Source of the DNA: Hypanus sabinus
Taxonomy: Eukaryota
Direction of reading: 5' to 3'
NCBI RefSeq assembly: GCF_030144855.1
Contig: NC_082722.1
Span: 27,590,001-27,654,000 of the forward strand
Length of the DNA stretch: 64,000 bases
Under the pieces are notes generated by a model that was not told where the DNA came from, made no database searches, and saw only the letters and a list, made by a program, of their open reading frames with translations. The translations under genes and the position numbers were made by a program. How positions within the stretch are numbered: the first letter of the stretch is position 1; each line of letters begins with the position of its first letter. Shown here piece by piece: positions 25,059 through 64,000 of this stretch.

Positions 25059-26624
25059 CTGTCTGTGACAGAAATAGATTCAGGTTTAGGACGTTGATCA
25101 CATAAAGAGAAAGCTTAGAGCTCAAACAGCAAGTTATTCCGTTTTTATAATGGCAGAGTTTCAAGAGGTACTGCGATAAATTCTATAAAGGGCGCATCGA
25201 GGAAGCCTCAAATGATTGATTGCAGTTCCGAGGATCCATTTTAAATCCAATCAGCACGAGCAGTTGCGATGCGGAATATGCTGCTCTTTGAAATATCTCC
25301 TACATTTCCACAAAGTAAACGGCAGAAAATAGGCTAGTCCATCGAGCGATGAAGAACCTGGCAGGGCATAAATTGTTATTCTTTTAGAAAAAAGACAATG
25401 CTATATACTCAAACCCATTTTGGTTGGCGATGAAACAATACTGAGCTTCCACGTGCTTCCTACGAACAGAGTTAAGATTTGTTTACAACGTCAAACGCCT
25501 CGGTATTTTGAGCAGTTACGTTTCCGAATTTCCACGAAGCGATTGGGATGTTATGCTGTTTTCATAGGAGCTTTGTCACCATTATTAAATTGTATCTCCT
25601 GCCCTCTCAGATTTGAAATTATGTAGCTGCTTAGGACCTAAAGCTGTTCATAGGTAACACATATTTTGTATATTGGATCCCACAGGACGCAATTGAGGTC
25701 TGTTTGGTGAGGAATTTAGCCGGGGGAGGATATGGACATTGCGAACGTTATTTTGTTGTGGATCTGGAGACTATTCTAATGAGAGACAGCTTAGTTTTAC
25801 GTTACAGGCAATTTGTGATGTCGAATACCCATTCCACGCTCTCATCACTCTCTGTGTAAGAAACTTACCTCTGACATCTGCTCTGTAGCTACTTCCAAAC
25901 ACCGTAAAACTGTGCCCTCTCGTGCGAGCCATTTCAGCCATTTAAGCATTTAATTTATTGTTTATTTATTTCAAATACTTGAATAAATGACAATCTCAGA
26001 AAAAAATCAAGTTGTTTTTGAATGTTAAGCAGAACTCTGTTTAGGCCAAATGATTGACAGTAAACTTAAATTTCTAATTTATGAGAGTTTAGCCGGGAGA
26101 GGATATGGACATTATTTTGCAGTGGATCTGGAGACTATTCTAATGAGAGACAGCTTAGTTTTACGTTACATGCAATTTGTGATGCCGAATACAAACATCT
26201 GCCTGCGGCAGAAAACACAATTTCCAGAAGGTAAGTTTTCTGTCGAGATTTCTGAACTGATCTTCAGATATTCCTTTTTTCTCTACACATAAATCGTAAA
26301 GATGAGAGCACATTGATTAGTTCCCCATTAACCGCTCTCTGTTCTCCATTCGTCCATTCCTCACGATGTGTAAGAATGGAGCAGTAACTTGGACCGATTA
26401 CTAAGCACTTAAAAACCGGTTGTCTGATAAAAATTGGCCTCGTTTTAGAATGGTTGGGATTGTCGTGATAGCTCTTAGGTAACAATTGAATAAGACTGCC
26501 AATACACTTTTAGTTTGAAATGCATTAGAGATAAGCCCTACATCACCAAATTTTCAGCAGCAGAAATTTGTTCAGTGTTAGTGGGACGGAAAAGCACAGG
26601 AAAGCATAAGATACTTTAGAAACA

Positions 26625-26920
26625 AAGAAAACTTACAGCATAATGTACGTCCTTCGCCCAACAAAGCTATGCCGAACATGTCCTTACCTTAGAAATTACC
26701 TAGGGTTACCCATAGCGCTCTATTTTTTTAAGCTTCATGTACCCATCCAGGAGTCTCTTAAAAGATCCTATTGTAACTGTCTGCACCACCGTCGCCGGCT
26801 GCCCAATCTCGCACCCATCACTGGCTGTGCAAAAAGAAATTACCTCTGACATCTCCTCTGCAGCTACTTTCCAAATACCGTAAAAATGTGCCCTCTCGTG
26901 CGAGCTATTTCCGGCTTGGC
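26625..26920 (-). mobile_element. CR1 3' end shared by both arms (mirror at 63455-63770)
   Basis: Same insertion point and flanks in both arms, so it predates the duplication. Confidence 0.8.
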
Positions 26921-27798
26921 AGAAAGCCTTCCGTTCTTTTTTAAAACATTTAATTTATTGTTTATTTATTTCAAATGCTTGAATACATGACAATCGCAGA
27001 ACAAAATCAAGATGTTTTTAAATGTGAAGCAGAGCTCTGGTTAGGCCAAAGGATTGACTGTAAATCGAAATTTCTAATTTATGAGACAATTTTATACCCC
27101 GGATGAGATAATCCTTTATAAGATCGCGCCTTTAAATGCCTCTGTCTTCATTACAAACATATTCCGAAATGATTTCAGCAAAGTTCTGTTAGGATAAACG
27201 TTTCTACTGAATGTTCATTATTCTTTAATGGATAATACGGAGCTGAACTGGAGTTAGTTGACTGTAAAATTGAAGCTACTATCTGCTGCTTCTGAGTGGA
27301 TGACATAGGAAACACTGAGCAAGTCACACAGCTTCTGCCGAGAGAAATAGTGTGAACATTTCAAGTCGATAATTTTTCCCGAGGTCATGAAGAGAAATGA
27401 TTTGTATTTTCCCCCTTTTAAAGAAGGTTCCCGATGTTTTCTGCTTAATTGCCGATTGCACACATCTGCAATGCTGTTTTTGCATTAATTACTCTCCTTT
27501 CCAATTAACGATCTCACGATATTAGCCGAACACAAAGTGACATGACTTTACTTCCCATTTCATTCGAGTCTTTATAAGTATCGTTGAAAGCCTCAGATAA
27601 AACGGCAGCTCTCGACATTGCAACTTCATGTAATGTTGTCTACCTGTTCCTTGTTCCCTAAGAATCGCGCGTGCAATTCTATTCTCAGGTAGCGTATTAG
27701 TTCCCATAAACACAAGGTGGAAATGCGTTCTTGGTAAACTGACAGATGAATTAAAATTCTATTCCGAACATTTTTACAGAAAACTTGCAGAAGCGCGC

Positions 27799-27836
27799 AT
27801 GCAAATATTCCTATTGGTGAATTATAGACAGGAAGT
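27799..27836 (-). promoter_or_regulatory. ETS, CCAAT and octamer module (left arm)
   Basis: On the + strand: ATGCAAAT 27799-27806, ATTGG 27813-27817, GGAAGT 27831-27836. All three are conserved in the mirror at 62294-62331. Confidence 0.45.
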
Positions 27837-28134
27837 GAATATATATATATATATATATCTGTCTTGAGAGGATATGAAACTTCATCGGACCTGAACAAGA
27901 TCAGCTGGCCTGTCAAATGGGCAGATAAAGTAGGAAAGGAAAACACAAGAATGCACTCACTTCTTTCGATGATAATTTAATTTCTTGGATTCATAATTCA
28001 CGAATGTGTGCTTAGAAGTCCAGAAACACAATTCTGAGAAAAGAAGGAAAATTGAAGTATTAATTCTATTGATCTGTCTGTACATGTTGACCCGATTTGC
28101 TGGATATTCCGTGCATTCCATATTTAATAGTCAG

Positions 28135-28275
28135 CACACTTTCTCTGCAGTGTACCTGTGCTGATAGAGAGTGTGGAGGAGATGTTTTTGCAATCCGAAT
28201 GAACCTTAATGCTGGCGTATACAATGAAGAAATTTAGAATCTAATTGCGCAAGGCCGTATTGAGGGCCAGTTTTT
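28135..28275 (-). mobile_element. Rex1-like LINE stub truncated by a deletion
   Basis: Mirrors the first ~140 bp of the Rex1 copy at 48820-48960, then jumps to sequence mirroring 62010 onward. Confidence 0.7.
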
Positions 28276-29519
28276 TGCAGTTTACTGTTTGGTTTTCCGG
28301 GGTAGATGGCGTTAACTGCCGTGCTATAATACATACTTCTCCGGAAAATGAATATAAAGGAGGGAGATAAGTCCGCAGATGCATAGACCCGAGGCATTAC
28401 GTCTGGTGGTCTGAGCGCAGTATCAGTGTTCTATTTCACAGTTTTGCTCTCTTCTCGCTGCTGCCATCAGGAAGGAAATGCAGCAGCTTTAGGTCCCAGA
28501 CCACCAGGTTTAGAAACAATTATTACCTTCAAACATCAGGCTTCTGAACCAATGTCGATAATTCACTCTTCTTGATACTGAACTGATTGAATAAACGATG
28601 GACTTGCTTTCAGTTATCTTACATTTCAGCTTCTTAGTATATTTCCTAACCCAATTATTTATGATTATTACAATTTTCTCTATTTGCTCAGATTGTCTTC
28701 CTTTGCACATTGGTTGTTCGTCAGTCTTTGCAGTTTTTCACTGAATATATGGCATTCCTTTGTTGCGCTGCGAGTGCCTGCAAGAAAATAAGTCTCGGGG
28801 TAATAAATGGCGACAAATACGTACTTTGATGCTACGTTATCTCTGAACGCTGAACTTCAATTTGAGGAATGCTGCAAATACATTGGAAACAGTTCTGCGT
28901 GGTGGTGTATAAGAATGATCCGTAGATGGGCGTGTGATCAGTTAAGGCGTGTTGGCCTGGCTACATTTGGATCCGCTGAAGTTTAGAAAAGGAAAAGTGG
29001 TATCGATTGATATGTATTTGATCTTGGGGTCTCTAAAAGAGGCAGTTATGAAAGGCTTATATGCCCTCGTGAGGAAAAATAAATTACTCCATGTGGTTGG
29101 TGTCTTTGAATGTCTCTTCCTGACATAAAACATTGAAACCTATATTTTTGTGTGATTTTAATGTTGACAATAAAATCTGCTCAAGAAGCAGCAAGTCGAA
29201 CGTTACTGTGATGGGCGGGGTAGGAATTTGATGTTACCGTCAGATCAGTCACAATTTTGTTGAATGGCCAAACATGTCGAGTTGCCAAGTGCCCTACTTC
29301 AGCTATGTTGTTTTCCCAGAAGTCTGCAGACTTTTAAAACTCCAGATATGTCTTTGAAATCTCCGTCTTATTAGAATGTAAACTCCCTCCTGTTTTGAGT
29401 AACCTCCAACAACTCACTGCAGCCAGACACATTGAATAGCCCCGAATTTTGCCTCAATGGCAAAACTGCATGGTATTCTATTGCCGGCATTGTTCGAATA
29501 ATGAGAGGTCTATACAGAC

Positions 29520-29960
29520 ATGGCCAAAAAGTATAGTTGTTGCTCGAACCAAACATCAGAATGTGGAAGAAATGCGAGCTAAGTGACTTTGACCGGGAAA
29601 TGATTGTTGGTGCCTGACTGGGTGATTAGTTAACTAAGAAACTGTTGATTGGCTGCGGACTACATGTACAACAGTCTCTACAGTTTAAATTGAATGGGGC
29701 GAAAAACAATACATGAAAAAACATCAAGTGCGTGACAATTCTTTGAGCGAAAGCACATAGTTAATGACAGAGACCAGAGGAGACTGGCTAGACTGGTTCA
29801 CGATGACAGGAAGGCGACAGTAAACACATGTTACTGTAATGGTGCAGAGAGGAGCATCTCTAAAAGCACAAAACGTCGAACCTTGTAGCAGATGGGCTGC
29901 AACAGCAAAAGATCACGAACATACAGAAATACACTCAGTAGCCACTTTATTGGATACTTC
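29520..29960 (+). mobile_element. Tc1/mariner non-autonomous derivative (left copy, one end deleted)
   Basis: Degenerate LSDFDRGMIVGA...GQRRLARLV..DRKAT-type transposase N-terminus. End motif cactcagtagccactttatt. Confidence 0.75.
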
Positions 29961-31019
29961 ATGTAGTTACTACATTTATCACTGCGATTATCGTGTCCAT
30001 AGATGCGAATTCATTTTCTCTTCTGATGCAGTTCATCTAAATGTTAGACAGACTTCACTGAGGGAATGCATTTCCTTTGCATTCTACTGAGTTACTCATT
30101 GGTCAGCTGGTACCTAAAGGCAATTTTTTCAACAATGATGGATACGAGAAAGTTACCTTCACTTTCCATTCCTAGAATAGGATTCGTGGTCCTTGATTTT
30201 ATTTTCAGAACACGTGTACAATGTATTTTACTAATAGAACCAGGGATGCAACTTGAATTTTCCTGCTCCATTAGAGCATATGTCGGCTATTCAATGACAG
30301 TGCATGTTTCCAACAGTTTGGTTATCTTGATTTTCTCTTTAGTTTGTGCTATAGCAGTGCAGTTCGTAGCTAAACTGCACTAACGGCGACTCCTTTGCTT
30401 GCATCTCTCGGATAAAATGCTAGTTCCATCCGTAATATCTCGTCTTTCCTTTTCAAGGTTCCTTTGAAGACCCTGACTTGGAGTTCCACGCGGACTTCGG
30501 TTCTCTGCGGAAACGGACCCGCTCTCCGGGCCGCACGTGCGGCCGCTTTTAGATATGCCGAGAACGCGGCCTGGAAAACCAGCGCGCCATCAGGAAATGT
30601 ATTTTCGTGGCTGTCGACACCAGCTAATTCGAGGGCGTCGCCTGATGTGTGGTGGGAGTACACGGAAGGTCGAAAGCAGCGTGCTGGCCGCTGGCTGTGT
30701 GCCTAAAGACCCCAGGTCTTCGGGCACAGAGCTCGGAAAAAGCATGGCAACAGACTTTTAACACCATGAATCACCGAGATGTTTTGTTAAGGCTCCCCTC
30801 TCGCTGTGAAACGTGTACATCCTTTTTCCCTTATGAAAGACAGAGAGAGCCCGTGGTATGTGGATAAAAGGGTGGACGAGTAGTCCTTGGGGTACTGCAA
30901 GTCTGAGTCTTTTTTTTTGAAGATTTGCTTCACGCTTGAGTGTTCGGTTGAGGATGCAGATGCTTTTTGTTGGAGTGGGAGGGGGCGGTCGTTAAGTAGC
31001 CTTCTATTTTACTAAGCTG

Positions 31020-32320
31020 CATGTACCTTTCTAAAAGCCTCTTACAAGACCCTATCGTATCAAGCTCTACTACCGTTACTGGCAGCACATTCCACGCACT
31101 CACCGCTCTCCAGATAAAAAAAACTTACCCCTGACATCTGTTCTGTACCTACTCTCCAGCACCTTAAACCTGTGTTCTCTTGTGGCAACCAACTCAGCCC
31201 TGGGAATTCAGCCCTCAGTAGCTTGTACAGCTCTGTCAGGTCACCTCGCATCCTCCTTCGCTGCAAGGTCACTCAGCCTATTCTCATAAGGCATGCACCC
31301 CAAACCAGGCAACATCTTTGTAAATCTCCTCTGCACACTTTCTATGCCTTTCACATCGTACCTGTAGTGAGTCGACCAGAAATGAGCACAGTACTCCAGG
31401 TGGGGTCTGACTAGGGTCCTACATAGCTGCAACATTACCTCTCGTCTCCTAAATTCAATTCCACGATTGATGAAGGCCAATTAACCATACGCCCTCTTAA
31501 CCACAGAGTCAACCTGTGCAGCTGCATTGAGCGTCCTATGGACTCGGACCCCGAGATCCCTCTGATTCTCCACACTGCCAAGAGTCTTCCCATTAACTCT
31601 ATATGCTGCCATCATATTTGACCTACCAAAATGATCCACTTCATACTTATTTGGTTTGAACACCATCTACCGCTTCTCAGCCCAGTTTCGCATCCTATCA
31701 ATGTCCCGCTGTAACCTCTGACAACCCTCCATAATATCCAGAACACCTCCAACCGCTGTGTCATCAACAAAAGTACTAACCCATCCCTCCACTTCCTTCA
31801 TCAATGTGTTTAGCCACATCCTCAAAAAATTCAAACAGTCTCGTCAGGCTCGACCTGCCCTTGACAAAGCCATGCTGACTACTCCTACTAATATTATACC
31901 TCTCCAAATGTTCATAAATTCTGCCTCTCAGGATCCCCTCCATCAGCTTACCCGGTAAAGATATTGACCCCTTACTCTTCCGAACCTCCAGCCACAGAGA
32001 CTCCGCAGACAATCGCTGTATGGCGTCCACCTTTTCTGCAGTTGTGATACAATCTCTGCTCAAGAGTGTCACGCCCCCACCTATTTTGCCTCCCTCCGTG
32101 TCCTTTCTGAAACATCTAAAACCGGCATTAGAAGTAACCGGTCCTGACCCTGGGCCCTCTAACTCTCTGTAATGGCCACCATATCATATCTCAAAGTACT
32201 GATCCACGCTCTAAGCTTATCCGCTTTATTCACAACACTCCTTGCATTAATGTAGACACATCTCAAGCCTTCGGTTTGAGCGCATCCCTTCTATCCTCCT
32301 TCAGCACTGGCCATAAGAAT
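31020..32320 (-). mobile_element. CR1 LINE fragments (RT and endonuclease), left arm only
   Basis: MAFINRGIEF..LVRPHLEYCAHFWS, SQHGFVKGRSSLTRLFEFF and LSAESLWLEVRKSKG. Confidence 0.85.
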
Positions 32321-35300
32321 TCTCTATTTGTGAGCTAACCGCCTCTTCCCCAGTGTCTTCAGTTCGGTTCCCACTTTTGTTCCCATTTTTATTCGCACTT
32401 TCATCACTAAAAGCAGTTGTTTATTCGTTAGTCGGAGGCACTTCCACCCAACGGTCGGCTCAAGGAAGGAGTAAAGGACACTTCGAAATTCACCACTGTC
32501 TCCCCTGAACCTAACAAATCAAACTAGCAATATTTTGGTCCTATGTTTAGTCATAGCTCTCGTTGCGGAAGTTTGCTTCGACTTTCAGCTTTTCGTCTTC
32601 TTTAAAACATGTACATGCGTGCGTTGCAAGTTCCTGTTTCTGACTCAATGCAAGTGCAATTTTGATACTGAGAAGATGCAGAGAGGTCGAGGCGAACTTG
32701 TTAATCTCGTAACTTGTGACCTGTGAAAGTCAATCATTTTGACTGTTAGTTCATCATCCTGCGGCTGCAGAGCCGCCCGAGTCTGAAAGAAACCGGTCAC
32801 ATGTGTAACTGTATCTCACTGATTATCAGCGACAGGCTGTAACCGCAATGTAAACTTCTTTATCCGATTTTCCATTCGGGCTGAAATCTTGTGCGACAGC
32901 CCATCTCTTGCGCACAGAGCAATGCGATACTAATGTTGCAAATGATCATTTTAAGGTAGCCGATGTTCAAATTCACCTGCTGTTTCTGTTGGTTGTAGAT
33001 ACTGGCTTTTTGAATAATTGTAAAAAAAATGGGTAATAAAGTCCGATCAAAAAGCTGACGCCTCATACCTAACAGATTGAGAGGTCGCCATTCTTACCTG
33101 GTTCTCAGTGTCTTCCTGCTTTGCAGTAACTTCGGTCATTTTGGGAATAACCTGAAGGCGAGGGACTCTTGCAACTTTCAAGGCATTATCTGGCTATATA
33201 AAAATTGAGACACTATTATGGAGTTCAGAAAATTTAGATTTTCCCCGTTTCTTTCTTTTTTTAATTTAAAATTTAGCTTCAGTGAAATCATCATCCATCG
33301 TCTAACACAGGCCCTGAACGTAAAGCAACGGTAATTATGGTCGTGCAAAAGGGAAAAGATGGGTGATCAGGTGAAACCTGTTTATATTTCTAGACATGTA
33401 CATTCGTAAGCTTTCTAATTAGTGAAATGTTGTAAAATATCATAGGAGATACATTGTCGAACCGGGTTAAAATGTTTGTTTTCACGATGTCAAGTATTTT
33501 TGAAATCACATATTCCTAGCAATATACGAATATTTGGGAAAAAATCCCACATTAGTATCCACGCTCCACATTTTTGCACAGTCACTTCAAACTGAGGAGC
33601 CATTTGTATTCTGCCAAATGTTGAAAGCAGATTCCGGTGGGAAGTTAAAAAGATCATTGTAAGTACTTTGCAAATAAACATGTAATGTAGCCAGAATGGC
33701 TTCTTTCTGTTTAGCAAAGTTCTAAGATTTATAGAATTAACATGTTATTTGCTTCGCTTACTGCAGTAATTCTGCTCCAAATTCAACAATTTTAGAAACT
33801 AAAGAAAGCGTTTCATCTCACCAAATTGGTTTGATTCTCACCTCCTATCAAGGAAATATGCTTGCATTTAAAGGAAGGAGTTGGGGCTGGGGGTGGAATC
33901 CCTGAGCCTCCGATGAACATTTATTCTTGATGCAAAATCGATTTTGTTACCCAAAGTAAGATCGCCTGAAGAAACTTTCTGAAATGTGTGTAGCAGTACC
34001 CGTTAATCTAATATTGTGTTTTGTGTATTACATTCACCTTCATCATTTGTGAATCTTATCCCCTCTCATCTAAAGTATGCTTCCTTCTTTCCAGTCTGAG
34101 TTACATTGTGCTTTCAGCTACTTCAGAAGCAATTGTTACAAAATCAACCTCAATCCATTTACTAACTATTTCCTCTGAACTCGATTCTGAAGATAACCAT
34201 ACGACTCAGTACCATGGTGCTACCTCCAGCACAGTAACAGTGAAGGAATTCCTTCACACATGAGTAGATATAATGCGTGTAGCTATATCGGGTACCTGAA
34301 TGACAGTGACATTCAATTCGGAATTGATTTACTTTGCTTCTGTACGCGATAATGAAGCACTAAATGCCTAACGAGCATCTACTCTGAGGAAAATATTTCC
34401 TTCACATTGACGTGACTTCTCAAGAGCGATCATTGAAAATTGTATTTTGTTAATTTCAATTCCGATTCACAATATTATGAAAGGTATGCATTTATTCATA
34501 CGGTATTTACACATGATGTGGATCACAACACATTTCGATATTTGCTGTTTATATTGGGTTAGGTGCCAGATAATCCGATGAAAGGTGAAACTTTGAAATA
34601 GAAATATCGTATCATTTAAATCAAAGTTAATTCTGTGACTTATTTTGGATGACCCAACACAAAGGTACGTGTGGCTTCGAATCAACAAATGCATTACAAA
34701 TATAGCCACCTTATGCTTGAACGTTTCTGTAGAATTCCATTGCTCAACATGTATGCCTCACAGTTTTGTTTGAAGTAAAGCCCAATATAGTTCAGTTCTA
34801 CGACTCACTCACTTCATGTAATCGCTAAAGGAACATCAGGCTGATATTTGAAGACAGCTTAAACAGTGGAATGTTTTCTTGAACCTATTTTTTCTCATTT
34901 GTCTCCACCTTCATTTTCACATTGTTCTAATCACTTTTTTTTCCCTTTTTCTCTCTCTGTTTTTCAGTTACTTGTGAAAAAAATTCTGTTCTATTTGCTT
35001 CTCTTCTGTCCACATGTGAACTCTGGTAACCTCGAGGATAATGTGAGGATCCATGGTGATATTTCCTGTTGTCAATTTATTTCTGCCTCATATCTCCAAA
35101 GAAGCAATGCTTCTGAATAAAAAGTACGGGCATTTAATACAGCATTTACTATCATTAACCCTCCGTATCAGAGAACTGAAAATCATTTTTCTTCATCAAT
35201 GATCAGAAAACTATCCAGTTATTGCTTTTGATATTTGCGAAAAGACGAAGAATTTGGAACTTCAGCTCAATGTGAATGGTCAAAAATTGAAGGAATATAG

Positions 35301-36226
35301 AAAATATGTAACTAACCTCGTGACTTTCTGTATTGGAACAGCGATTGATTTTATTTGTGAATTATTAACCCTTCGAAATGTTTGTTAAAAATCTGCAGTT
35401 TTGAAATAATAAGAACAACATTTGAATTCCCGCGAACATTAAGATAATTTGATAACTTCAACTAATGGGGGTTAGCTGAAAACAAAACTTATTCATATTA
35501 TTTCACAACTGCAGATTTTTAACAAACATTTCAAAGGTTAGCAAATTCTTCATATTCTATTACCATATCGGCCTGTACGCAAGCATTTAAAGCATTTCTG
35601 TAAATGGCAGGATACTTCTTTCCAAGAACTACTTATTAGACAATAACATGGAGACAAACGACTTCCGACCCTGGAACATGGAGCAACACAATAAGCGCTG
35701 GCGGAACTCAGCGTGCCAGGCAGCACCATGGGAAGGAAATCGACAGTCGACGGCTGGGTCTGAAGCTCTTCATCTGCACTTCATTGTCTAGCGAGGAAAT
35801 TAGATATTGTGGAACATCGAAATTACACCTTCTAATCTTCATCCCTGGCCTTCTGCTTTTCGTTTTTGTAACGTCTGAAAGATCGAATTTTTAAAAGATT
35901 TTATTTTTTTATTATTTAAATCATTCAGATTTGCATACGAAACTTTATAAATGATTTAAACACTTCAAGAAGAAATGTTTTGTCAATATAGTTATAATCG
36001 GATATTGTCTGTCAAGTTAGTTCTCCGATTTATATGTGCGGGTAATTTGTGCACACACAACTGCCGAGATACCAACTTTAATGGTAAACTCTTATAATGT
36101 ACATGGCCTCGTCCTGTAGACCTTCCCAAATATTTCTATCATCTCGAATGCGGAGAGTTGCTGCAGATAATATTGTTCTGATATCTCCCCAAGATTACTA
36201 ATGTGTTCTGCTGGGTTAGGACTCAC

Positions 36227-36308
36227 CACATAAATAACACAAATCGAACAAAACGGAAGAAAAGTAAATGGAGACGGTTTTGGAAATAGCCGATTAGTTT
36301 GGCACCTT
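36227..36308 (-). other. Candidate 82-nt exon ending ATGTG|gtgagt (left arm)
   Basis: Acceptor gtttctcttcacag and the donor are both conserved, at identical length, in the mirror at 44038-44119(+). Confidence 0.5.
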
Positions 36309-39300: not shown

Positions 39301-39535
39301 CAGATATCCTGCGCCGAATGATCAGAGCTGGTTCCTTTGAACAATTAACGTTGCCATTGCCGTGCTCCGCGGCCTTTCGACTGCCGGTTCAATGTTATTC
39401 CCCGTTAGCATCCGATCTTTATGGATAAGTGATTGTAATCGTTGATTGAACATCGCAGGGAAGCTTACATGAGCTTACCGTTGTTGGTACTGCTTTTCCT
39501 AACATGGTGTCAGGTAATTTTGCACACCTATCTAC

Positions 39536-39658
39536 TTATAAGTTAAGCACTCCCTTTCAAATAGTCCAGTTAAACGATGATAGTTTGTCTTGATATTTTT
39601 CCGTTCTAGATGTATCTTTTAAACAAACTCCCGCCCTTGAAGTGTTCCTCCTGATTGG
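39536..39658 (-). promoter_or_regulatory. Candidate outward promoter and non-coding first exon (left arm)
   Basis: On the minus strand: CCAATCAG (39658-39651), GGGCGGGAG (39636-39628), TTTAAAAG (39623-39616), and donor-like TAA|gtagat at 39536. Confidence 0.35.
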
Positions 39659-40370
39659 ATCTGAGGAGCAGCACTTTCGGTAGCTGCAATATTAAGCTAG
39701 AATTCACAACGGTAAGCATAGTACTCCTCAAAACGTGAATTAAAATCTTACAAAGAATATTTAAAATTAAAAGTAACTGTGCAATGGTTATTAACAATTA
39801 CACGGTAGTCCACATTAACAATGACCAGTACTTTTGCATCAACAATTAGACAAAGACATAAATCATCTGAAGTTTAGTTTAAGGTGTAAAATCCTGAAAA
39901 AATGTCTTCATACGAGTGAAACTGTTTATAGAAGACTCAGCCAGTTAGATAATATGAAAATTAAAACAATGTGCAGTGGAATAACATCAGCGAGATTGTT
40001 CCGAGATTGGCAATTTACATGCTTATACTTTTTTTTTTGTATTGCTTATTATGAAGTGTGGATTACACAACAATTCTCTTTTCAACGTTTTATTTGTACC
40101 CTCTCCCCAATGTGTAGGATTGATTTGTAAATATTAGCCATATCGTTGGCGTAAATCATTTAACAGCCTATTTTCTCAGTAAATATCTATTGACCCATTA
40201 TAAAGGTAAAAGACGGATATACTGAGCAGGCAGCATTGTTTAACTTTGTTCTGTATTCTTCCAGCAAATAAATTCAATACAGAATTTAATTCACGTTTTG
40301 TGGAATACTATTCTTACTGCTGTGAATTCTAGCTTAATATTGCAGCTACCGAAAGTGCTGTTCCTCAGAT

Positions 40371-41542: not shown

Positions 41543-41599
<57 letters not shown>

Positions 41600-46481: not shown

Positions 46482-46534
<53 letters not shown>

Positions 46535-48819: not shown

Positions 48820-49660
48820 AAAAACTGGCCCTCAATACGCCCTTGTGCAGATAGATCCTGGATTTCCTTACTGTGGACTCCAGCGTTAGGTTTCGTTCGG
48901 ATTGTAAAACACTTTCCTTCACAATGTCCATCGGCACAGGATCACCGCAGAGAACGTATGTAGCCCCCTCCTCCACTCGCTTTATATCTACATTTGTGCA
49001 GCTATGTACAGATCCAACACCAGATACAAATTTGATTATGACACTACATTTGTCGGCAGTATCAAAATCAGCATACAGGAGGGATATTGAAAACTTGGTT
49101 GTGTGATGTAATAACAACAGCCTCTCACTCAATGTCAATAAGACCAAGAAGCTGATTGAAGACTTCAGTAAAGGAAAACTGGAGGCCAAGAGCCAGTAAT
49201 CATCGGAGGATCAGAGCTGGATAGGGTCAGTTACTTAAACGTCCTAGGTGTCACTATCTGAGAGGACATGTCCTGGACACATTATATAAATATTATAGTG
49301 AAGAAAGCACGACAGCGCCTTTACTTGCTAAGGAGGTTCAGCATGTTATCGACAACCTTGGCAAACTTCTATAAATAAGTGTTGGAAATTATGCTGACTG
49401 GCTGTATTCCAGCCTGGTAAGGGAACAGCAATGCCTTTGAGCGGAAAATCCTGCAGAAGTAGTGGATTCGTTCCAGTACATCAAGGTTAAATCCTCCCGA
49501 CCATTGAGCACATCTACATGAAACGTTGCCAAAGTAAAGCAGAATCAATCATCAAAGATCCTCACCACCCAGGACATGTTCTTTTCTTGCTGTGGCTATC
49601 AGGATGAAGGTACAAGTGCCTCAGGACTCATACCACCAGGTTCAAGAACAGTTACTATAA
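48820..49660 (+). mobile_element. Rex1/Babar-like LINE RT fragment
   Basis: Degenerate LNTPLC.WILDFLT...STG.PQ...AYRRDIENLV.WCNNN.LSLNVNKTKKLI.DF. Confidence 0.8.
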
Positions 49661-49669
49661 ATTGGAAAC

Positions 49670-52600: not shown

Positions 52601-53660
52601 AAACATCTTGCACGATCAAAATCACTCATTTATGTGGAATGAGTGCCCGTAGCAGTAGGGAAGTTCTCCTCCAGAAAGCTTCTCGCATCAGATGTAGAAA
52701 GGAAAACTCGATTGGTGCATTTGGAGGCGATATTCTGAACTTCGCTGGGTATAAGAGCGCAGGTTTTAGATTTTTCTCATAACATTCAGACATCAGAGGT
52801 TTAAAAACAAGCCTTGCCTTCATTACTTCTGGACTAACGTCTTCTACTAAACGAAAATTGTGATCTTGAAATTTGACCATCCCTACATGCCGAGCCACAC
52901 GAATAAGTTGCTCTTTAACATTCACATAGTGAAATCGAACAATTACAACCGGTGGTTTAGCTAAAGCAATTGGTGATCGACGAGAATTCTGTGAGCGCGA
53001 TCGAGTAACGGAGGACTGTCTGGGAATACAGAAGGGAACGCATCCTTTCAAAGTTGAGCAAAATACTTCGGGTGGTCCCCTTGTTCAATACCTTTCCGGA
53101 AGACCAAGAATGCGTGGGTTCTGTCTTCTGGACTGATTCTCAAAGTCGTCACTCTTGGCTTTAAGTGTTTCCACCTGCTTAATCGTCGGAAGTAAGTTCT
53201 GCTCCATTTTATCAATTATCAAATCTCGCTTCAGAGCGTCTTCTTGCAGAGTTACGATTACAACTTGCTGCTGGTTAACTACAGAATCCGGCTTATCCAT
53301 ATAATCTTGAAAAGCCTTTATATCTTGTTTAAAAATTTGTCGTTGTTCTTCAAATTTTTGATTTAAAACCTCCAATAACATTTCATAAGTCAATTCAGTG
53401 CCCTTCGCATCAGTCGTCTTATTCTTCCCGTTACCGTTAAAATCCTTCCCGTGTTCTCGCCCTTTAGATCTAAGAGCCATTTCTGTATTCTTTTCTTCAA
53501 AAATTCACAATAAACTCTTAAAGATAAGTCCAATAAAGTAACAAGAATCTTTTGGAGTAGGTAAAAATAAGTTAAATAAGGGTGATCATAGGTTTTAAAA
53601 AGTAAAGGTTATGGAGCAAATCTGGAACAGTGCTCACTCCATGAGCGTCTCCTGCTGACC
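49670..53660 (-). mobile_element. L1-clade element: 5' UTR, ORF1, APE and N-terminal RT, with the 3' half missing
   Basis: ORF1 has a coiled coil plus ENQSRRQNPRILGLPE and PALLYPAK. APE: NVYAPN, IMGGDFN, SRIDYF. RT: GKAPGPDGY, SYRPISLLN, RGTRQGCPLS. Multiple frameshifts. Confidence 0.93.
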
Positions 53661-54119
53661 TCCTAATCTAGACCTTGTGTAACTTTATTGACGCAGGTTC
53701 ATAGTAGCCTTCTTCGAACCAGTCATCCAAACATCCATGTGTCTCAGCCGTGCTGTCTTCACCATTCATATTCATATAACATGCAGGACCAGTTGATTAA
53801 TCAGCAGCAATTCGCAAAAGATACTAAAAACCAACAAATTCAAGATGATGATTGTAAAACATTTCAAGAGAAAAAGAAGCAGAAACAATCAACCAGATTA
53901 CGGGATCCTGCAGCAGTTTAACTCAATCTGATCACTTGCATTGCACAATGAAATAGCAAATACTGTTCACTAAAATCTTGCTTTAAATTACAACCTGATG
54001 AAAGAAATCATACATTCCTATAAATACAAGCTTGGTCCTGTTTTATTCAGAATCACACAAATAATATTACGATTTATTTATTATTACTGAACATAGATCC
54101 TTAATTTATTCATTGTCCG

Positions 54120-54250
54120 ACGGATTCAGATGCTGCAGATGTGTGCTTGAGGAAAGAGCAAGGAGGCTTCAGGAGAAACAGAGGCTGTGTTGACAAGACC
54201 ATCACACTGTGTAACATCATAGAACAGTGCGCAGACTAGCAGAGACAAAT
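54120..54250 (+). mobile_element. RTE-clade RT fragment
   Basis: CLRKEQGGFRRNRGCVD..ITLCNIIEQC. Confidence 0.55.
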
Positions 54251-54690
54251 GTATAAGAGATAAGACAATCCATATTAACTGTGCGGATAGATTACGGGAT
54301 GAATAAGCAAGGACATCTTCCTTTAATAGATATAGCCATTCCCAGTAAACACACAAAACATATAGAAGCCAATAAGTGCAAAACAACAAGAATATGCTAG
54401 ATTCAAAAAGGAAATTGAAAGGCTATGGAACATGAACCGGATATACAGTCCAAATAGTAGTATCTACAACTGGTATCATCCCACCGTCACGACACTGTAT
54501 CAGCAAACAATTCGATGTATGCAGCAAAATTTATGCAGATCTTCAGAAACCTCTATACTAAACACCACTGGAATAGTCTGAATATTCCTAACAATTGAGA
54601 ACTCAGTGAGTTTGGCTACAGCCATACCTTAGGTTTCACCAGCTTGAGCAGAGAAAAAAAATAAAATGTAATAATAATAAAATTAATATA
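54250..54690 (+). mobile_element. R4/Dong-like 3' fragment with TAA-rich tail
   Basis: KYARFKKEIERLWNMNR...VVSTTGIIP, ending ...caccagcttgagcagagaaaa...taataataataa. Confidence 0.7.
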
Positions 54691-54789
54691 TAAGCTGTAA
54701 CAACGGAGAACATGAAACGAGGAGTCCTTGAAAGTGAGCACATAGGTTGTTGGAACAGTTCAGCTGTAAGGCATGTGCATGTAGGGCAT

Positions 54790-57700
54790 GTAGGGAGCAG
54801 TTAATCCCTCTAGATCAGGAGCCTGTTTGTTGCGGAGTGATAACTTTTCCTGAACTTGGTGGTATGAGTCCCGAGTCTGCTGTATCATTTTTTTCTGAGG
54901 ACAGTAATGAGAAGAAAGGATGAACTGGCTGGTGGGGGTCCGTGATGATGGATGCTGCTGATTATGATATCTCTGCATGTATATGTGCTCAATGATGAGG
55001 AAGATTTTGTCTGTGTTGGCCTGGTCCGCATACACTACATTTTGAAGGTATTTCCGTTCTATAGTTTAGGTGTTTCATTCCAGGCTCCACTGCACACCTA
55101 CCGCGGTTAGGCAAAGCGGTAGATGTCACGCCAGTTCTTCGCAAACTCGGAAGGAAGTAAATGTGCTGCCATGCTATCATCGTAACCAGGAAAGGTCCTC
55201 TGAAATAGTAACACTGAGTAATGAAAAGTGGCTAACCACCTCTAGCTCTGATCCCCCGATGAGAACTGGCTCACGGACTTCCGGTTTCTTCCCCTTGAAG
55301 TGCATAATCAACTCGTTCCTCTTGCTGACATTGAATAAGAGTTTGTTTTTTTGCTCTGGCACCACACGGTCAGATTTTCAATCTACCTGCTACATATGAA
55401 TCGGTCTCCTCCATTGATTCGGCCCACGACAGTGGTGTCCTCACAACTCTTAAATATGTTTTGAAGCTGTGCTTAGCCACACAGTTATAGGTGTAAACCG
55501 ATCAGAGCAGAATGATGTTCACACATCCTTGTGGGACACCTGTGCTTATGGAGCTTGTGGAGGAAATGTTGCTGCCATTCTGTAATCACTGTGGACTTCA
55601 ACTGAGGAAATCGCGGAATAAATTGTTCTAGACGGCATTGAAAGTAAAGTCTTCAAGCTTATTGATTAGTTTTGAGGAAATGATAGAGTCGATAAAGAGC
55701 TTCCTGATGTATCCAGATATCCCAGGGTAATTGAAGTACCAATGAAATAGCACGTGCTGTAGATCCGTCGTAACGGTAGGCAAGGTGGACGGATCTAAGT
55801 CGCCTGTTAGGCAGCAGTGTATATGTTACATTACCTAGCTCTCTAAGCACTTTCTCACTCTGGATGGAAGTGCTACAGGAAGGTAGCAGGTTAACACGTT
55901 CCTCTTAAGCACTGGTATAAACGCAATCTGCTTGAAGCCGAGGAGCACCTTAGATTGATCAGCACAGTTCTTTAGTTCTCGGCAACTATCCCATCTGAGC
56001 CGGATGCTTTTCATGGGTTCATTGTCCTAAAGGGAGCTGTCAAGCCGTCTCGGGGATTGGCATCACAGAATCATCGGGGTCTGTGGGAGTTTGTGATCGT
56101 TCCTTCATGCTTTTACGATCACGGCAATCATAGAAGACATTCAGCTCCTCCGGTCGCGAAGCATTATTGTTACCTTTGTCACTTGATTTCAAAGCAACAT
56201 TAACAAAATGCTGGAGGAACTCAACAAAGCAGGCAGCATCTATGAAAAAGTGTAAATAGTCGACGTTCAAGGTGGCCGGTGTTAGGTGGAACCTGGAGAC
56301 AGGGAAGTGAAGTGCCGGGATGTTGATTGTTGAAATAACTGAAGAGTTGGAGAAGGAGGCACCTGATAGGAGAGGACTGAAGAAAGGGAAGGAGGAGTAT
56401 CACCTGAAGGAGGGGATGGGCCGGTAAAGTAAGGGACTGAAATTGGAATGGGAAGTCATGCGGGTGGGCGGAAGTGGAGGAATGACCGGAAGTTGATCCG
56501 ATCAGCTTGGAGTCTAGCCAGAGGAAATATAAGGCGATTGGCTTCCAACCTGTGTGTGGCCTGTCTGTGGCAGAAGAGGATGCTGTGGTCTGACATGTCC
56601 GAATGGTAATGGGAAGAAGAATTGAAATGAGTGGCCACCAAGAAATCTTACTTTTTGTGGCCGACGGAGAGAAGGTGCTCGATGAAGCGTTCTCCCAGTC
56701 TACGTCGGGTCTCACCGAAAAACAGGATGCCACGCCGGGAGCACCGGATACAGTAGTAACCCCAATGGAATCGCAGTTGCAGTATCGTCTCGCTTTTTGT
56801 GGCTCTGAGTGGTCATAAGGGAGGAGGTGAATGGGCAGATGAGGCACTTGTTCTGCTCGAAAGACTAAGCGCCCGGAGAGTGGTCAGTTGGGTAGCACGA
56901 GGGGACAAATGATTTGCATAGGGACGCCCTGTAGAGAACAGATAGTTCGGAGGGGGGCGGGGTAGGGAAAGGTGTGCATGGTGGTCGGACCCTATAGGAA
57001 ATGGCGGCAGATACATAGAATTACATGCTGTATGCGGAGGCAGTGAGTTTGTACTTGAGGTCAAGAGGAATCTTATCCATGTGTGACAGTGGGAGGATGG
57101 CACGAAATGCAAGAGATTCTGATGAGGACAGTATTGATGGTGGAGGAAAGAATGTTATTTTCCGTAAGAAGGAGAACATCTCAATAGTACTGGAATGGAA
57201 AACCCCACCATGAGTGTGGATGTATTTTTAAAAGTGGCAGTGTAGGAAGAAGTGTAGTCCAAATAGTTATGATAGTCAATGTGTTTATAAAATATATCCC
57301 TAGTTAGCCTGTTCAGCGATTGAGACAGATATCGAGAAAGGGGAGACATATTTCATAAATTGTACAACTTGTGGCCAGCATGGACGTTGGAGGCAACGTT
57401 GATGAAATAGACGAACTTTGTATAGGTGCAGGAAGCAGCACCAAAGCAGTCGTCAATGCAATGTTGAAAGAGTTCGGCAGCCATGCTGGCGTAATATTGG
57501 GACATTGTCCGTTGCACATGGCCAATGAGAGATCAGGCATTGCTAGGACTCAAGCGGTTGCCCATCGCTGCACAGTGGGTTTGAAGGAAGTCAGAGGATC
57601 GCAAGGAGAAACTGTTGAAGATGAGTTACAGATCTGTCAGACAGAGGACGGTGTAGCTGGTTGGTTCTGCTGTCGAGGAAGAAGTTGAGAGCGTTAAGAC

Positions 57701-58960
57701 AATCCTGAAGGTGAATAGAAAAGTACAGAGACTGGACATTCATAGTAAAAATGAAACGATCTGTGTCAGGTTACCTAAGTTCATAGAGGAAATGGAGAGC
57801 GTGTAAAGTGTCACGGATGTAGTTACGAAGGTCTGAAACAAGGTTCCTCCCTTCTTTCTTATTCTGACTTCTGCCACTTTCTTTCCAGTTCTGATGAAGG
57901 ATTTTGACCCAATACGTCAACTGATTATTCTCTTACATGAATGCTGCCTGGCCTGCTGAGTAACTCCAGCATATTGTTTGTATGGTTTCAGATTTCCAGG
58001 ATCTGCAGATTTCTGATTTGATTACACCTTGATAGCATTCAAGCCCAGCCGCAACTGGTGGGCGTCCTTCGTTCATTCAAGTTTAATCTTGAATGCTCAC
58101 TTCGCCCGTGATATGTCTTTATGGACCTATTATAACTTTATTGTTCGCCTGCCTTGAAGCCTGTGATCTGACCTCCGCAGACTGCAGATGCCATGGTTCA
58201 TCCAAGACTTTTGGACTCACTTCTCTACAACTGTTTTCTTTTTTCACACGTCCGTGATAACCGTGATGTATTCTTTCAGTTTCGTAGACGAGACCTTGAA
58301 CACAGCCCAGTCCACCGACTCGAAGCAATACCGTGACCGTTCCTCTGACTCCGGCGACGGCCTTTTTGTTGTCCAAATATCTGGATCCTTGATCGTTTAC
58401 CTTTGCCTCTATGCAGGTAGGAGAAGGACAGCCAAGTGGTCAGATGTGGCTTTTCTGCCTGGACGTGTAGGCCTTTCTTATCTTTTTATACAGTAGCAGT
58501 GGACTAGTGTGCCTGATGTTCCGGTGCTACAGGTCATACGCTGAGGGTGAATGGGCAGACATTTCCTCAAACAAGCTTTATTGAATTTCCCGACTATGAT
58601 TTGAAATGCGTCGAGATGGACAGTTACATATTTAGCATTGGCATCATACAGTATCTCAGTCGAACGATGGTAGTAAGTAAACTGCGGTCAAGATCATGAA
58701 GGAGAACTCTCTTGGTAAATAGAACGGTCGACGTTTGATCGTCAGCTGATCAAGACTGGACGAACAAGATCACGAGAAAACTGCCACATCGGAGAAGCAC
58801 CGTTTATCATGAAATAGATCCCGACACCTTTCATCTTTTCCGAATCACTAGTTCGGTTCATCCTGTAGATCGAGAAGCCATCGGTCTGTTCGCTTCCTAT
58901 ATTTCCTCGGAGTCCTCTGTAAGCACTAGCCAACTTGCTAGGCCTTTAATTAAAAACTGT
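54790..58960 (-). mobile_element. Rex1-like LINE (APE 58040-58960, RT/3' end 54790-56190) interrupted by a Penelope-like element
   Basis: GFSIYRMNRT..KMKGVGIYFMIN (APE) and LFNVSKRNELIMHFKG..PVLIGGSELEVVSHF..LSVTISEDLSW (RT end), on the same strand and in the expected order. Confidence 0.75.
56190..58010 (-). mobile_element. Penelope-like element (RT C-terminus and GIY-YIG), degenerate
   Basis: LPFLDI....DIFYKHIDYHNYLDYTSS (RT thumb) and GVTYCIRCSRRGILFFGETRRRLGERFIEHL (GIY-YIG). Terminal repeats at 56190-56280 and 57840-58010 are in opposite orientation. Confidence 0.85.
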
Positions 58961-59447
58961 TATCACTCAAACATTAAATTCTCGGTTGGACTAAACGAGA
59001 ATTAGCGGGGTTATAGCTTTCTCATAATAAATTACGGATGGCAGCTATGATCTGCTGGATCTTCTCCAGTGTTCGACAGTGCTGTACCGCAGTCGTGGGC
59101 ACCATTGTTCACATGATTTGTTAATTCATTATTTGAACGCAATCTCGCACGCTGCCAGAATGAGATTTGAAGTATGATTTTCTTCACTGTTCCAGCATTT
59201 AGATTACATGGCGTAAGTCATATCAGTAGTTTGCTGGAGAATTTTAGAAGGCAACCGAATAGCGACAAAGTAAAGCTGATTTATAGCGATGTAAGTTGCA
59301 CACGAGAAGGAAAGCAGAATCAGAGTTGTTTTTTTATTGAATCAGCCATGATTGTCAGCGAGGAATTCAGTCTGATAAATTTAGTTTGTGAGTATGCAGA
59401 GGGAAGAGCATAGTGATTTAAGAGATTGATGCTAAACACTTCCTCAC

Positions 59448-59534
59448 CTGGATTACTCTCAAACTCTTGCTCCAACTTTTTCCTGACCTTTTTAGTACTG
59501 ACTATCTCGCTTCCTCCTTTGCTTCCGTCCATTC
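59448..59534 (-). CDS. Candidate exon B of an unidentified gene, (G)MDGSKGGSEIVSTKKVRKKLEQEFESNP
   Basis: Acceptor cctgactcttccgcag, donor G|gtgagg, 87 nt, phase 1/1, in frame with exon A. Confidence 0.55.
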
Positions 59535-59694
59535 CTGCGGAAGAGTCAGGACACGGAACTTCGACTGTTCACTTCTGTCCATAAATGCTGTTTGACCCAA
59601 TTTAGAGAAGCTTTACTGTACTTCCTCTAAGAAAAACATACCATTGAAAAAGATCAAAATGGTTCGCAGTTGTGGCTAAACCGAGTCATTTTAC

Positions 59695-59925
59695 CTTGCT
59701 GCAGCACGGCTTTCTTGTCATGTAACAAGTCCTTTGCAACAAAGGTTACATACCGTGGCATGTCTGTGGTTTCGTATTTAGCTTTCATAATCCACAACAC
59801 AAGATCATCGAGACCAAGTTTATCCAGTGCAGATAAACCCCAGTATACTGTGTCTCTCCCGGCCCCATCGTCTTCTGCCTCTTGGATCCAAGGCACATGC
59901 GTTCGCCACCTCCCCTCCAAGTTCA
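59695..59925 (-). CDS. Candidate exon A of an unidentified gene (77 codons)
   Basis: Acceptor ttctgtgttgtccag, donor G|gtaaaa, 231 nt, phase 1/1, open: VNLEGRWRTHVPWIQEAEDDGAGRDTVYWGLSALDKLGLDDLVLWIMKAKYETTDMPRYVTFVAKDLLHDKKAVLQQ. Confidence 0.55.
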
Positions 59926-60379
59926 CTGGACAACACAGAATTTGCATTCTGAATGCTTCGCGGTTTGTCTAATGGATTGTGTGTTACTGATCATGAAAGT
60001 CACCATGAAGTTTCCCTATCACGTACCATTTTTTAAATCGCCTATATTTGATATTTCAATTCATAATTCAAGTCAATTAAATAGTTGCCCATAAAGTAGG
60101 CTGAAAAGTTTTCTTCTTGGCGGGGCATTAGGCAGGGCGTGTGCTGCATGGCATAACAGGTTTTATAAAGATTATAAAAGCAGCACGCACACTCTGTTCG
60201 ATGCGCTGCGTTTAAGTGTACATCGGTCAGTGATCATGTTGATGTGCATGCTCGGCGGGCAAAACATATTTTGTGTATTCATTATTATCAAGTTGTTTTA
60301 TTTTCAGCATTATTTGTGAAAGCAAGATGTATGGCAAATGTTGCATCAACTGTGATGCTTTCTGTTTTACTTGTTGCGA

Positions 60380-61480
60380 GTAGAAGCTTAAATCTCAACC
60401 TCGAAGTATGGTTTTTCTTATGAAGAAACCCTATAAATTCTACTTTGAGTGAAAGATTGCCGACTGACTCAGTGTCTGGGCTCTTCACATTTGTTGCTCA
60501 ACAGGCCTTATCGATCTGAGAGTTTGGTTCAGAGATAGTCGGAAGACAATAGCTTTCGTGGCACCGATTGTATGGCGAGATTTAGTTCTATCTGACCAGT
60601 GTGTCTGGTTTTTCTGTTATAAACAAGCAAACGATTTAACACTGCAATTTCCATTCAGCATCGAGAGCTGTACCACATGATGATAATCCTGCAGTAGTGA
60701 AGCCACCAGAGACATAGAGTCTAAAGGAGGCAGAGGAAGGTGACAATGTGTGAGAGGTAGGAATGGAAAAAAACGACTCTGATACCGATCCAGATTTTGA
60801 ACTCTTAATGTCGAGAGAGCCTCTTGTGACACTCAGTCTGTGTTTAATGACTTGGTCAGAGACTTGGGTGTGTTAAAGCAGAATTGCTAGATTCAAAACT
60901 ACAAGGATGAAATCTGCTGTCTCCAGGTACAAGAATTTCCGTGGATGTTTTCGATACTTGAAAGAGATGCTTCTCAGAATAACTGATTCTAAAATTAAGG
61001 AAGGCATTTTCTGATGTTCCGCATATCAAACAGGTCATCAATGGCAGCCCATTCGAAGAACGTCTATTGAGACCGGAGAAAATCCCGTGAAGGCGTTCAA
61101 GGGTGTCGTTGGAATGCTTATCTGCAACTACAGAGTTTCAAACTACGTTCAGCTGCTTGACAACATACGTCAAGCATACAAAACAATGCAGTACAGAACG
61201 TCAGTAAAACATCATTTTCTTCATTCTCATTTAGACTTCTTCCATGCAGATATTGGTGCTGTTGGTAACGAGCATGGTGAAATTATTCACAAGGAGATGC
61301 AGATATGAGAAAATGGTGTCAAGACTGCTGGAATCTATCAATGCTGGCGGATTACTGTTGGACACTTATGCAAAAAGCCTCAGGCATTGAATAAAAACGA
61401 ACATCTTTGCAAAATCTTTTAGTTGAATTATTGCCGGGCGTCATTACCATTATACACTTAAAAGTTTTGTATTCAAAAAA
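60380..61480 (+). mobile_element. Chapaev-like (CMC superfamily) DNA transposon, internally deleted and degenerate
   Basis: FNDLVRDLG, KIKEGIF and KAFKGVVG..NYVQLLDNIRQAYKTM..HFLHSHLDFF.ADIGAVGNEHGE...SMLADYCW. The family assignment is from memory of the motif. Confidence 0.6.
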
Positions 61481-62293
61481 AGTTTATGCGTCGTTTCTCC
61501 AATTTTCTGCCTTATACAACTAACATGAAATGGCCCTTCTATTCATCTTCAAGCAGTTTATCTCATCCACATCTCAAGAAGCAACACTTTAGAAAAACGT
61601 TTCTACCCAGTGGTTCCATCCATCCACGACACATACATTTCACACAAAGCCTTCCACTTCCCCTATCTTTACCTGGCTCCATTTGCCCTTCACCTCTCCT
61701 CTAATGGCCCCAAATATCTATCTCTCTTTTATTTGTTAGATTCCAGAAATATAACCTTTGCCGTTCTGCTTATCAGCCTCCAGAATCTGTACCTAGCTTG
61801 ACCTCCCCGACCCTCCTTTCACGTCAGCTGACTCAGCAGCTGAAAGTTGTTCCAATTGGCATACGCATCTCGCCTATCATTTACACCTGAGGGGGATCAG
61901 GACCCTTACGGACTATGGTAGCATAATAAACGGAAGAATATTCCATATTCAAGGAATATTAAGTATCCTAATAGAATAGATAACAAAAAAAATAATTGTC
62001 CAATTTGCTGGACTATTGAATATGGAATGCATGGAATATCCAGCAAATCGTGTAAGCATGTACAGGCAGATCAACAGAATTAACACTTCAATTTTCCTTC
62101 ATTTCTCAGAATTGTGTTTCTGGACTTCCAAACCTACGTTCATGAATTATGATTCCAAGCAATTAAATTAACATCGTAAGAAGTGAGTGCATTCTTGTGT
62201 TTTTCTTTCCTACTTTATCTGTCCGTTTGAAAGGCTAGCTGCTCTTGTTCAAGTCCAAGGAAGTCTCACATCCTTTCAAGACAAATATTTTTC

Positions 62294-62331
62294 ACTTCCC
62301 GTTTATAATTCACCAATACGAATATTTGCAT
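62294..62331 (+). promoter_or_regulatory. ETS, CCAAT and octamer module (right arm)
   Basis: ACTTCC 62294-62299, CCAAT 62313-62317, ATTTGCAT 62324-62331. A downstream ATGAAATG|gtaagt lies at 62860-62873. Confidence 0.45.
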
Positions 62332-63454
62332 GCGAGTTTCTGCAAGTTTTCTCTAAAAAAAATACTCGGAATAGAATTCTAATTCATCTGTCAATTTAAC
62401 AAGAAATAATTTGTACCTTGTGTTTATGGGAACTAATACGCTACATGAGAATAGAATTTCACTGGCGAGACTGCTGGTGACATCATGGAAAATCTGGGGT
62501 CAAAGACTTCATCTCTCTGATACCTGATATTTATGTGTTAGTCATTCGCTGAGAGCATTGAATGGAAACCAATTAATTTGCAGATTAAAGGACACGATAA
62601 ACCGGTGTCAGGGGAAAAGCATTCTCCTCTCTGATGAATTAAATAAGGGACCGCAGCTAGTAGATGTTCAGTTTAATTTGACATCGTGTTCGCAACAGAC
62701 AACTTGGCCAAACGTCACATTCCTGTGCTGTACTCGTCCATTGTTACCTTAAACACAGTGTTAAGGGAATCAGGAACAGGCAGACGACATTACTTAAAGT
62801 TGCAATGTCGAGAGTTGTCTTTTTATCTAAAACTTTCAACGATACTTTTAAAGGCTCGAATGAAATGGTAAGTAAAGTCATGTCGCTTTGCATTCGGCTA
62901 ATATCGTTTGATCGTTAATTGGAAAACAGGGTAATTAATGCAAAAACAACATTGCAGATCTTTGTAATCCGAAATTAATCAGAAAACATCGGGAACCTTC
63001 TTTGAAAAGGGGAGAATGCAAATCATTTCTCTGCATGACCTCGTGAAAAATTGTGGCTTGCTCAGTGTTTCCTATGTCTTCCACTCAGTAGTAGCAAGCA
63101 GTAGTTTTAATTTTTCAGTCAGCTAACTCCAGTTCAGCTCCCTATTAACCACTGAAGAATAATGGACATTCAGTTGTAACGTTTATCCAAAAAGAACGTT
63201 GCTGAAAACATTTCGGAATATGATTGTAATGAAGGCAGAGGTATTTAAAAGCCGATATTATAAAGGATTACCTCGTCTGGGGTATAAAATTGTCTCATAA
63301 ATTAGAAATTTAGATTTAAGGTCAATCATTTGGCCTAAACAGAGCTCTGCTTAACATTTAAAAACATCTTGATTTTTTTTCTGAGACTGTCATGTATTCA
63401 AGCATTTGAAATAAATAAACAATAATTTAAATGCTTAAAAAAAGAACGAAAGGT

Positions 63455-63770
63455 TTTCTGCCGAGACTGAAATGGCTCGCACGAGAGGGCACAGTTTTAC
63501 GGAGTTTGGAAGTTGCTACAGAGGAGATGTCAGATGCAAGTTTTTTACACAGAGAGTGGTGAGAGCGTGGGATAGGCTGCCGGCGACAGTGGTGGAGACG
63601 GATACAATAGGGTCTTTTAAGAGACTCCTAGATAGGTACATGGAGCTTAGAAAAATAGAGGGCTATGGGTAACCCTAGGTAATTTCTAAGGTAAGGACAT
63701 GATCGGCATAGTTTTGTGGGTTGAGGGGCGCGCATTGTGCTGTAAGTTTTCTTTGTTTCTAAAGAGTCTT
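63455..63770 (+). mobile_element. CR1 3' end (mirror of 26625-26920)
   Basis: ARTRGHSF..FFTQRVVRAWDRLPATVVE..FKRLLDRYM plus tail. Confidence 0.85.
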
Positions 63771-64000
63771 ATGCTTTCCTGTGCTTGTCCGTCCAACTAA
63801 CGCTGAACAAATTTCTGCTGTTGAATATATAGAGCTGTAGGGTTTATCTCTAAAGCATTTAAAACTAAAAATGCATCGGCAGTCTTATTCAATTGCCACC
63901 TAAGAGCTACCACGACAATCCCAACCATTCTCAAACGAGGCCAGTCTTTATCAGCCAACCGGTATTTAAATGCTTAGTAATCGGTCCACGTTACTGCTCC

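Follow-up and report, generated by a model that had tools for sequence, protein, structure and literature searches.

An ancient inverted duplication upstream of a SIRP-like VJ-C1 receptor gene in the stingray Hypanus sabinus

Mirrored arms and their spacer

We examined a window of 64,000 bp from the genome of the stingray Hypanus sabinus (assembly GCF_030144855.1, contig NC_082722.1, positions 27,590,001 to 27,654,000; all coordinates below count from the first base of the window). It holds a SIRP-like receptor gene on the minus strand and, upstream of that gene, two long arms of DNA that mirror each other around a short unique spacer (Table 1). The arms were defined by a minus-strand self-BLAST of the whole window, which recovered eight blocks in strict reverse collinear order (26378-39748 versus 40281-64000). 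Their E-values range from 0 to 1e-86, so chance similarity of the arms is excluded. Over these blocks two long stretches, 8.2 kb when aligned, are collinear in reverse-complement orientation, and a global re-alignment of all eight gave 86.1% identity over 8,242 aligned bases. The mirror duplication reported in an earlier note on this DNA is therefore real, and its identity falls inside the 80–90% claimed there. The arm sequence occurs only twice in the window, without a third, direct copy, and the block must have been at least about 9 kb long when it was copied.

The right arm reaches the end of the window, as the earlier note had described, and its last base read (64000) is also where the window edge cuts it. 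Following the offset of the last block (x -> 90378 - x), that base pairs with 26378, close to the partner of about 26350 given before. The left start had been placed at 25850, but this rests on a match (25828-26086 / 63293-63576) that lies off the diagonal and represents a second copy of a CR1-like tail, a sequence that is extremely abundant in related genomes according to contig depth; the demonstrable left arm thus starts at 26378. Just outside it we observed a local rearrangement (25712-26192), in which 25712-25828 is repeated at 26085-26192 with 87% identity. The repeated piece flanks the CR1-like tail copy, here spanning 25837-26086, which resembles 26810-27086 (80%).

A unique spacer is indeed present between the arms, with a size of 532 bp rather than the approximately 590 bp estimated earlier. 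Its internal symmetry did not exceed that of shuffled controls and no second copy was found in the window, which speaks against the spacer being a known repeat or what is left of the centre of a palindrome. No Rfam RNA family was matched anywhere in the window.

Table 1. Features of the 64-kb window, with positions counted from its first base. EN, endonuclease; LINE, long interspersed nuclear element; RT, reverse transcriptase; TM, transmembrane; TSD, target-site duplication.
Feature	Position	Strand	Size, content or evidence
Left arm, as far as the window shows	26378-39748		13.4 kb, including ~4.8 kb of left-only insertions; collinear mirror blocks
Right arm, ended by the window edge	40281-64000		23.7 kb, including ~15 kb of right-only insertions; collinear mirror blocks
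Unique AT-rich spacer between the arms	39749-40280		532 bp, 31% GC; sequence, symmetry and copy search
Mirror block 1	right 40281-40537, left 39748-39494
Mirror block 2	right 40531-40886, left 39081-38726
Mirror block 3	right 41656-44957, left 38731-35386
Mirror block 4	right 45120-46458, left 30847-29512
Mirror block 5	right 46591-47446, left 29516-28635
Mirror block 6	right 48452-48960, left 28647-28135
Mirror block 7	right 62006-62468, left 28136-27665
Mirror block 8	right 62764-64000, left 27659-26378
Right-only LINE 3' fragment with A-rich tail	47447-48451	-	zf-RVT (PF13966), below its cut-off
Right-only 13-kb composite insertion	48961-62005		left arm continuous at 28135/28136
L1-like element within 48961-62005	ORF1 52629-53084, EN 51090-51827, RT 49645-50971	-	ORF1: Transposase_22
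Left-only 4.4-kb insertion	31002-35385		LINE RT fragment 31779-32183 (-)
Left-only 412-bp insertion	39082-39493		possible TSD of 6-7 bp
Right-only 769-bp insertion	40887-41655		repeat family also at 597-1313 and 53827-54733
Smaller one-arm insertions	46459-46590 and 62469-62763
Receptor gene, leader exon	23052-23106	-	MSVKLRVSYMAFLAITWL; phase-1 donor
Receptor gene, V exon	22540-22845	-	V-set 9e-11; J-like motif GNGTRLSVF in the same exon
Receptor gene, C1 exon	18615-18908	-	C1-set 3.5e-14
Receptor gene, TM exon	17909-18028	-	Asp within the helix (LILAYTVDGLAIL)
Receptor gene, cytoplasmic exons	17333-17392, 14875-14976, 13201-13338	-

Insertions, divergence and age of the arms

The gaps between the mirror blocks correspond to insertions in a single arm, of which we counted seven. 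The clearest one is the right-only LINE fragment of about 1 kb, which carries a perfect 13-bp target-site duplication (AGGAAATATGCTA) on both flanks, while the left arm has a single copy of these 13 bp at its empty site (28635-28647). Opposite the 4.4-kb insertion of the left arm, the right arm holds 162 bp only (44958-45119), and some of the smaller one-arm insertions bear short, plausible target-site duplications. Between 54 and 62 kb, within the 13-kb insertion, no open reading frame (ORF) matched Pfam. That one-arm insertions postdate the duplication, as was claimed before, is borne out by the LINE fragment with its target-site duplication and empty left site, and by the 13-kb and 4.4-kb insertions. 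Conversely, both arms share a CR1-like tail on the diagonal (26709-26954 / 63439-63669), which thus predates the copying.

This CR1-like tail is the only shared transposable element (TE) for which the proposed order of events could be confirmed. The earlier note had also listed Tc1, Penelope and Rex1 sequences as shared and a Dong element as a later insertion; the L1-like and CR1-like assignments are supported, whereas we could confirm none of the four names Tc1, Penelope, Rex1 and Dong. For Tc1 and Penelope, a search with sequence motifs returned no match, which is a weak negative. We also noted an unclassified repeat family with three diverged copies (67-73%) in the window, at 597-1313, 40906-41581 and 53827-54733. 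The second copy makes up the right-arm-only insertion listed in Table 1 and stands beside an (ATT)n-like microsatellite at about 41530-41600.

Apart from TE fragments, no protein domain was found in the arms by Pfam search, and no tandem subrepeat structure was seen in them. A tblastn search with seven proteins of the receptor family detected no immunoglobulin-family exon in the arms (26-64 kb); its significant matches within the window were confined to the minus strand at 13.2-23.1 kb, and the best match elsewhere had E = 0.18.

The Kimura two-parameter distance (K2P) between the arms, taken from the same global re-alignment, was 0.155, or 0.136 outside CpG sites, and it was fairly even along the arms (0.126-0.180 by block). 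Each arm has thus gone its own way since the copying, with about 0.155 substitutions per site between the two and with LINEs and other elements inserted separately. The longest perfect run between them is 47 bp, which rules out recent arm-to-arm gene conversion and any present homogenisation. The palindromes P1-P8 of the human Y chromosome have arms that are more than 99.9% identical through arm-to-arm gene conversion. Sex-chromosome ampliconic palindromes of this kind share with the stingray locus the long inverted arms and the short unique spacer, but the stingray arms are only 86% identical and contain no conversion tract longer than 47 bp.

Typical neutral rates of vertebrates in general, rather than of rays, are 0.5-2 x 10^-9 per site per year, and at such rates the inverted copying would be roughly 40-150 million years old. 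Segmental duplications are formally defined by at least 90% identity over at least 1 kb. The arms, at 86.1%, fall under this threshold, and we therefore regard "ancient inverted duplication" as the accurate name.

One island of 0.9 kb (left 35580-36480, right 43871-44790) was more similar than the remainder, with 90.3% identity (824/913) against 85.6% in the rest of the arms. The paired ORFs in this island differ at 13 of 76 residues and look neutral, and the island contains no long perfect run and has no Pfam or Rfam match. An old patch of gene conversion would be one possible explanation, and constraint on a non-coding element another.

The flanking receptor gene and its family

The left arm lies upstream of the minus-strand receptor gene, whose ATG is at 23106. 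The gene looks complete, with leader, V, C1, TM and tail exons, and it is the only receptor gene in the window; no partner gene was seen within the 64 kb. It combines a V-set domain carrying a GxGTxLxV-type motif with one C1-set domain and a TM exon, and has no segments separated by recombination signal sequences, as is characteristic of the non-rearranging VJ-C1 family. Its closest proteins come from Hypanus sabinus, Hemitrygon akajei, Mobula and sharks, with automatic names such as SIRP-like and NCR3LG1-like, and its exons are each 62-91% identical to those of family members from stingrays and mantas.

The paired SIRP receptors of mammals comprise SIRP alpha, beta and gamma (PMC12975943). 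Like the window gene, they combine a V domain with a J-like motif, C1-set and TM regions, and their members differ in tail and in TM charge; however, SIRPs have a V-C1-C1 layout, and the window gene has a single C1 domain. "SIRP-like" is used here as the NCBI automatic name of the relatives and as a description of domain layout, and implies no orthology.

Both tyrosines that resemble those of immunoreceptor tyrosine-based inhibitory motifs are replaced in the last exon (13201-13338), which reads LTFVALMLP and ILPADINTS where the paralogues have LTYAALQLP and TLYADVNTS. The aspartate (Asp) of the TM helix is also present in a relative from H. akajei (P0167). The window gene has no annotated protein in a collection of 5.8 billion proteins, though five paralogues on the same chromosome have one.

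The nearest of the paralogues is P0165, an H. sabinus protein encoded on the same 85.9-Mb chromosome, whose C1 part ends in the same intron read-through as that of the window gene (GKM*). Identity between the two reaches 98 of 101 residues in V, compared with 15 of 19 in the leader and 87 of 101 in C1. Compared with the exons next to it, the V exon therefore appears to have been homogenised, which suggests its gene conversion between two members of the family. Finally, 41% of sampled V-exon words were present in one RNA run (X21, organism A), which indicates that a V exon about 3% different, belonging to a paralogue or to the orthologue of a close relative, is transcribed.

Origin of the duplication and a possible second gene

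A TE-rich block upstream of the receptor gene was copied in reverse around the 532-bp single-copy spacer. We consider it probable that this ancient inverted duplication arose in a cluster of SIRP-like VJ-C1-TM genes that do not rearrange and that evolve by birth and death. The copied unit would then have comprised the receptor gene and the region upstream of it, which is what such a cluster would lead one to expect. The right arm would lead, a few kilobases past 64000, to a mirrored paralogue or remnant on the plus strand, and the outcome would be a head-to-head pair about 44 kb apart. Replication template switching, or a tandem copy followed by inversion, may have been the route; a single junction does not separate the two, and the spacer carries no microhomology or repeat that would decide between copying mechanisms. 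The arms themselves would be passengers, and any function would sit in the genes at their outer ends, because the arms contain no recognisable gene.

Under the offset of the last block, the mirrored ATG is projected about 3.3 kb past base 64000 and the V exon 3.5-3.8 kb past it. If only the left side carries the CR1-like pieces at 23990-25000 and 25828-26086, both distances shorten by about 1.3 kb. No short ORF call of the mirrored V exon was found among the collected proteins, and scans of metagenomes with the V exon and with a 30-mer from the window end gave no match. That a mirrored gene, or what remains of one, follows after base 64000 we judge somewhat better than an even bet; that it is an intact gene we would suggest only tentatively.

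Contigs of four related genomes bear on this projection. They were placed on 22001-28000 at a likeness of at least 80%, depths being sums over contigs, and the runs represent relatives rather than the source genome. In all four runs the non-TE depth at 22-26.4 kb was 1.3-1.8 times that of the duplicated 26.4-28 kb, and there was no depth step at 26378. Pieces with 82-87% identity were found all along 22.5-26.4 kb among the longest pieces listed, and two of the listed pieces cross 26378 (X20 record 22 and X7 record 31). The depth of 26.4-28 kb is low compared with true TEs, yet it suggests more than two copies in the relatives. Taken as a whole, the contigs lean towards a continuation of the right arm, in a way that is suggestive but not decisive. 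The very close paralogue P0165 on this chromosome leans the same way, as it could be the mirrored gene.

Several points weigh against a facing gene. The outer end of the right arm lies outside the window, and the second gene itself was never seen. Depth is not copy number, and the ratio of summed to per-contig depth suggests about 6-30 copies of the whole 22-28 kb region in the relatives, so that the pieces of about 85% identity may stem from other units of the family. One of the two crossing pieces, X7 record 31, loses similarity at 26122, beside the local rearrangement, and this break could mark the end of the arm about 250 bp beyond what the window shows. P0165 may equally well be another family gene of this chromosome. 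Annotation cannot settle whether a partner is present, because the window gene itself has no annotated protein. 

The strongest alternative is that only intergenic DNA was copied and the arm ends soon past 64000, or near the mirror of 26.1 kb, with no receptor gene facing the one in the window. Both arms show only TE-rich, gene-free DNA, as this reading would have it, and the contig break at 26122 fits it too. For none of the annotated H. sabinus paralogues that were looked up is another gene annotated within 10 kb, so the annotation does not show close head-to-head pairing as a rule. Against this, the non-TE depth does not fall to the left of 26378 in any of the four runs, and the many paralogues on the same chromosome make it evident that the family has spread by copying of gene units. 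We hold a purely intergenic duplication to be possible, though doubtful.

A large composite or foldback-type transposon is a far less probable source, whether the arms were two separate insertions of it or its long inverted ends. The arms consist largely of TE debris, and depth sums make 26.4-28 kb appear multi-copy in the relatives, but the true high-copy repeats beside the arms exceed the non-TE depth by 4-5 orders of magnitude. The centre of 532 bp has no coding capacity, and the arms are a mosaic of different repeats without a transposase or RT ORF on the shared diagonal. Their presence only twice in 64 kb, and an ancestral length of at least 9 kb, far above known foldback ends, speak against a transposon as well. 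As the earlier note had argued, an assembly artefact, here a false foldback produced by chimeric long reads or by mis-scaffolding, can be set aside with near certainty: long-read assembly is known to create inverted joins around short spacers by mistake, but false arms would be near identical, and these differ at 14% of sites and carry seven arm-specific insertions, one of them with a clean target-site duplication.

The duplication within a cluster of receptor genes, which we prefer, has parallels elsewhere. The human leukocyte receptor complex contains two oppositely oriented LILR sub-clusters. In the T-cell receptor (TCR) beta and delta loci, an inverted V segment lies behind the C exon (PMC12227049). 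The stingray locus may be analogous to both, with receptor units of a birth-and-death family copied in reverse and then diverging with separate TE insertions. It differs from them in that only the gene-free upstream part is visible and the partner is unobserved, and in that it belongs to an unnamed VJ-C1 group of cartilaginous fishes.

The suggestion that such a pair would act as a paired activating/inhibitory or heterodimer system is speculation. We think it very unlikely that an intact partner gene, transcribed divergently and with a basic TM residue matching the Asp of the window gene, stands at the end of the right arm and that the two form a co-regulated, TCR-like heterodimer without rearrangement.

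Old inverted duplications are a normal route of growth for immune-receptor clusters, and the present one is ordinary in this respect and of little importance in itself. To the large unnamed VJ-C1 family of sharks and rays it contributes an example that is dated and has clean internal markers of age. The TE insertions that are shared between the arms, together with those specific to one of them, provide a relative clock for dating the expansion of this family across stingray genomes. The duplication would gain in importance with an intact partner gene at the end of the arm, since two head-to-head genes whose membrane charges are complementary, or whose signalling tails are opposite, would be a two-gene unit in which paired or heterodimeric action could be tested.

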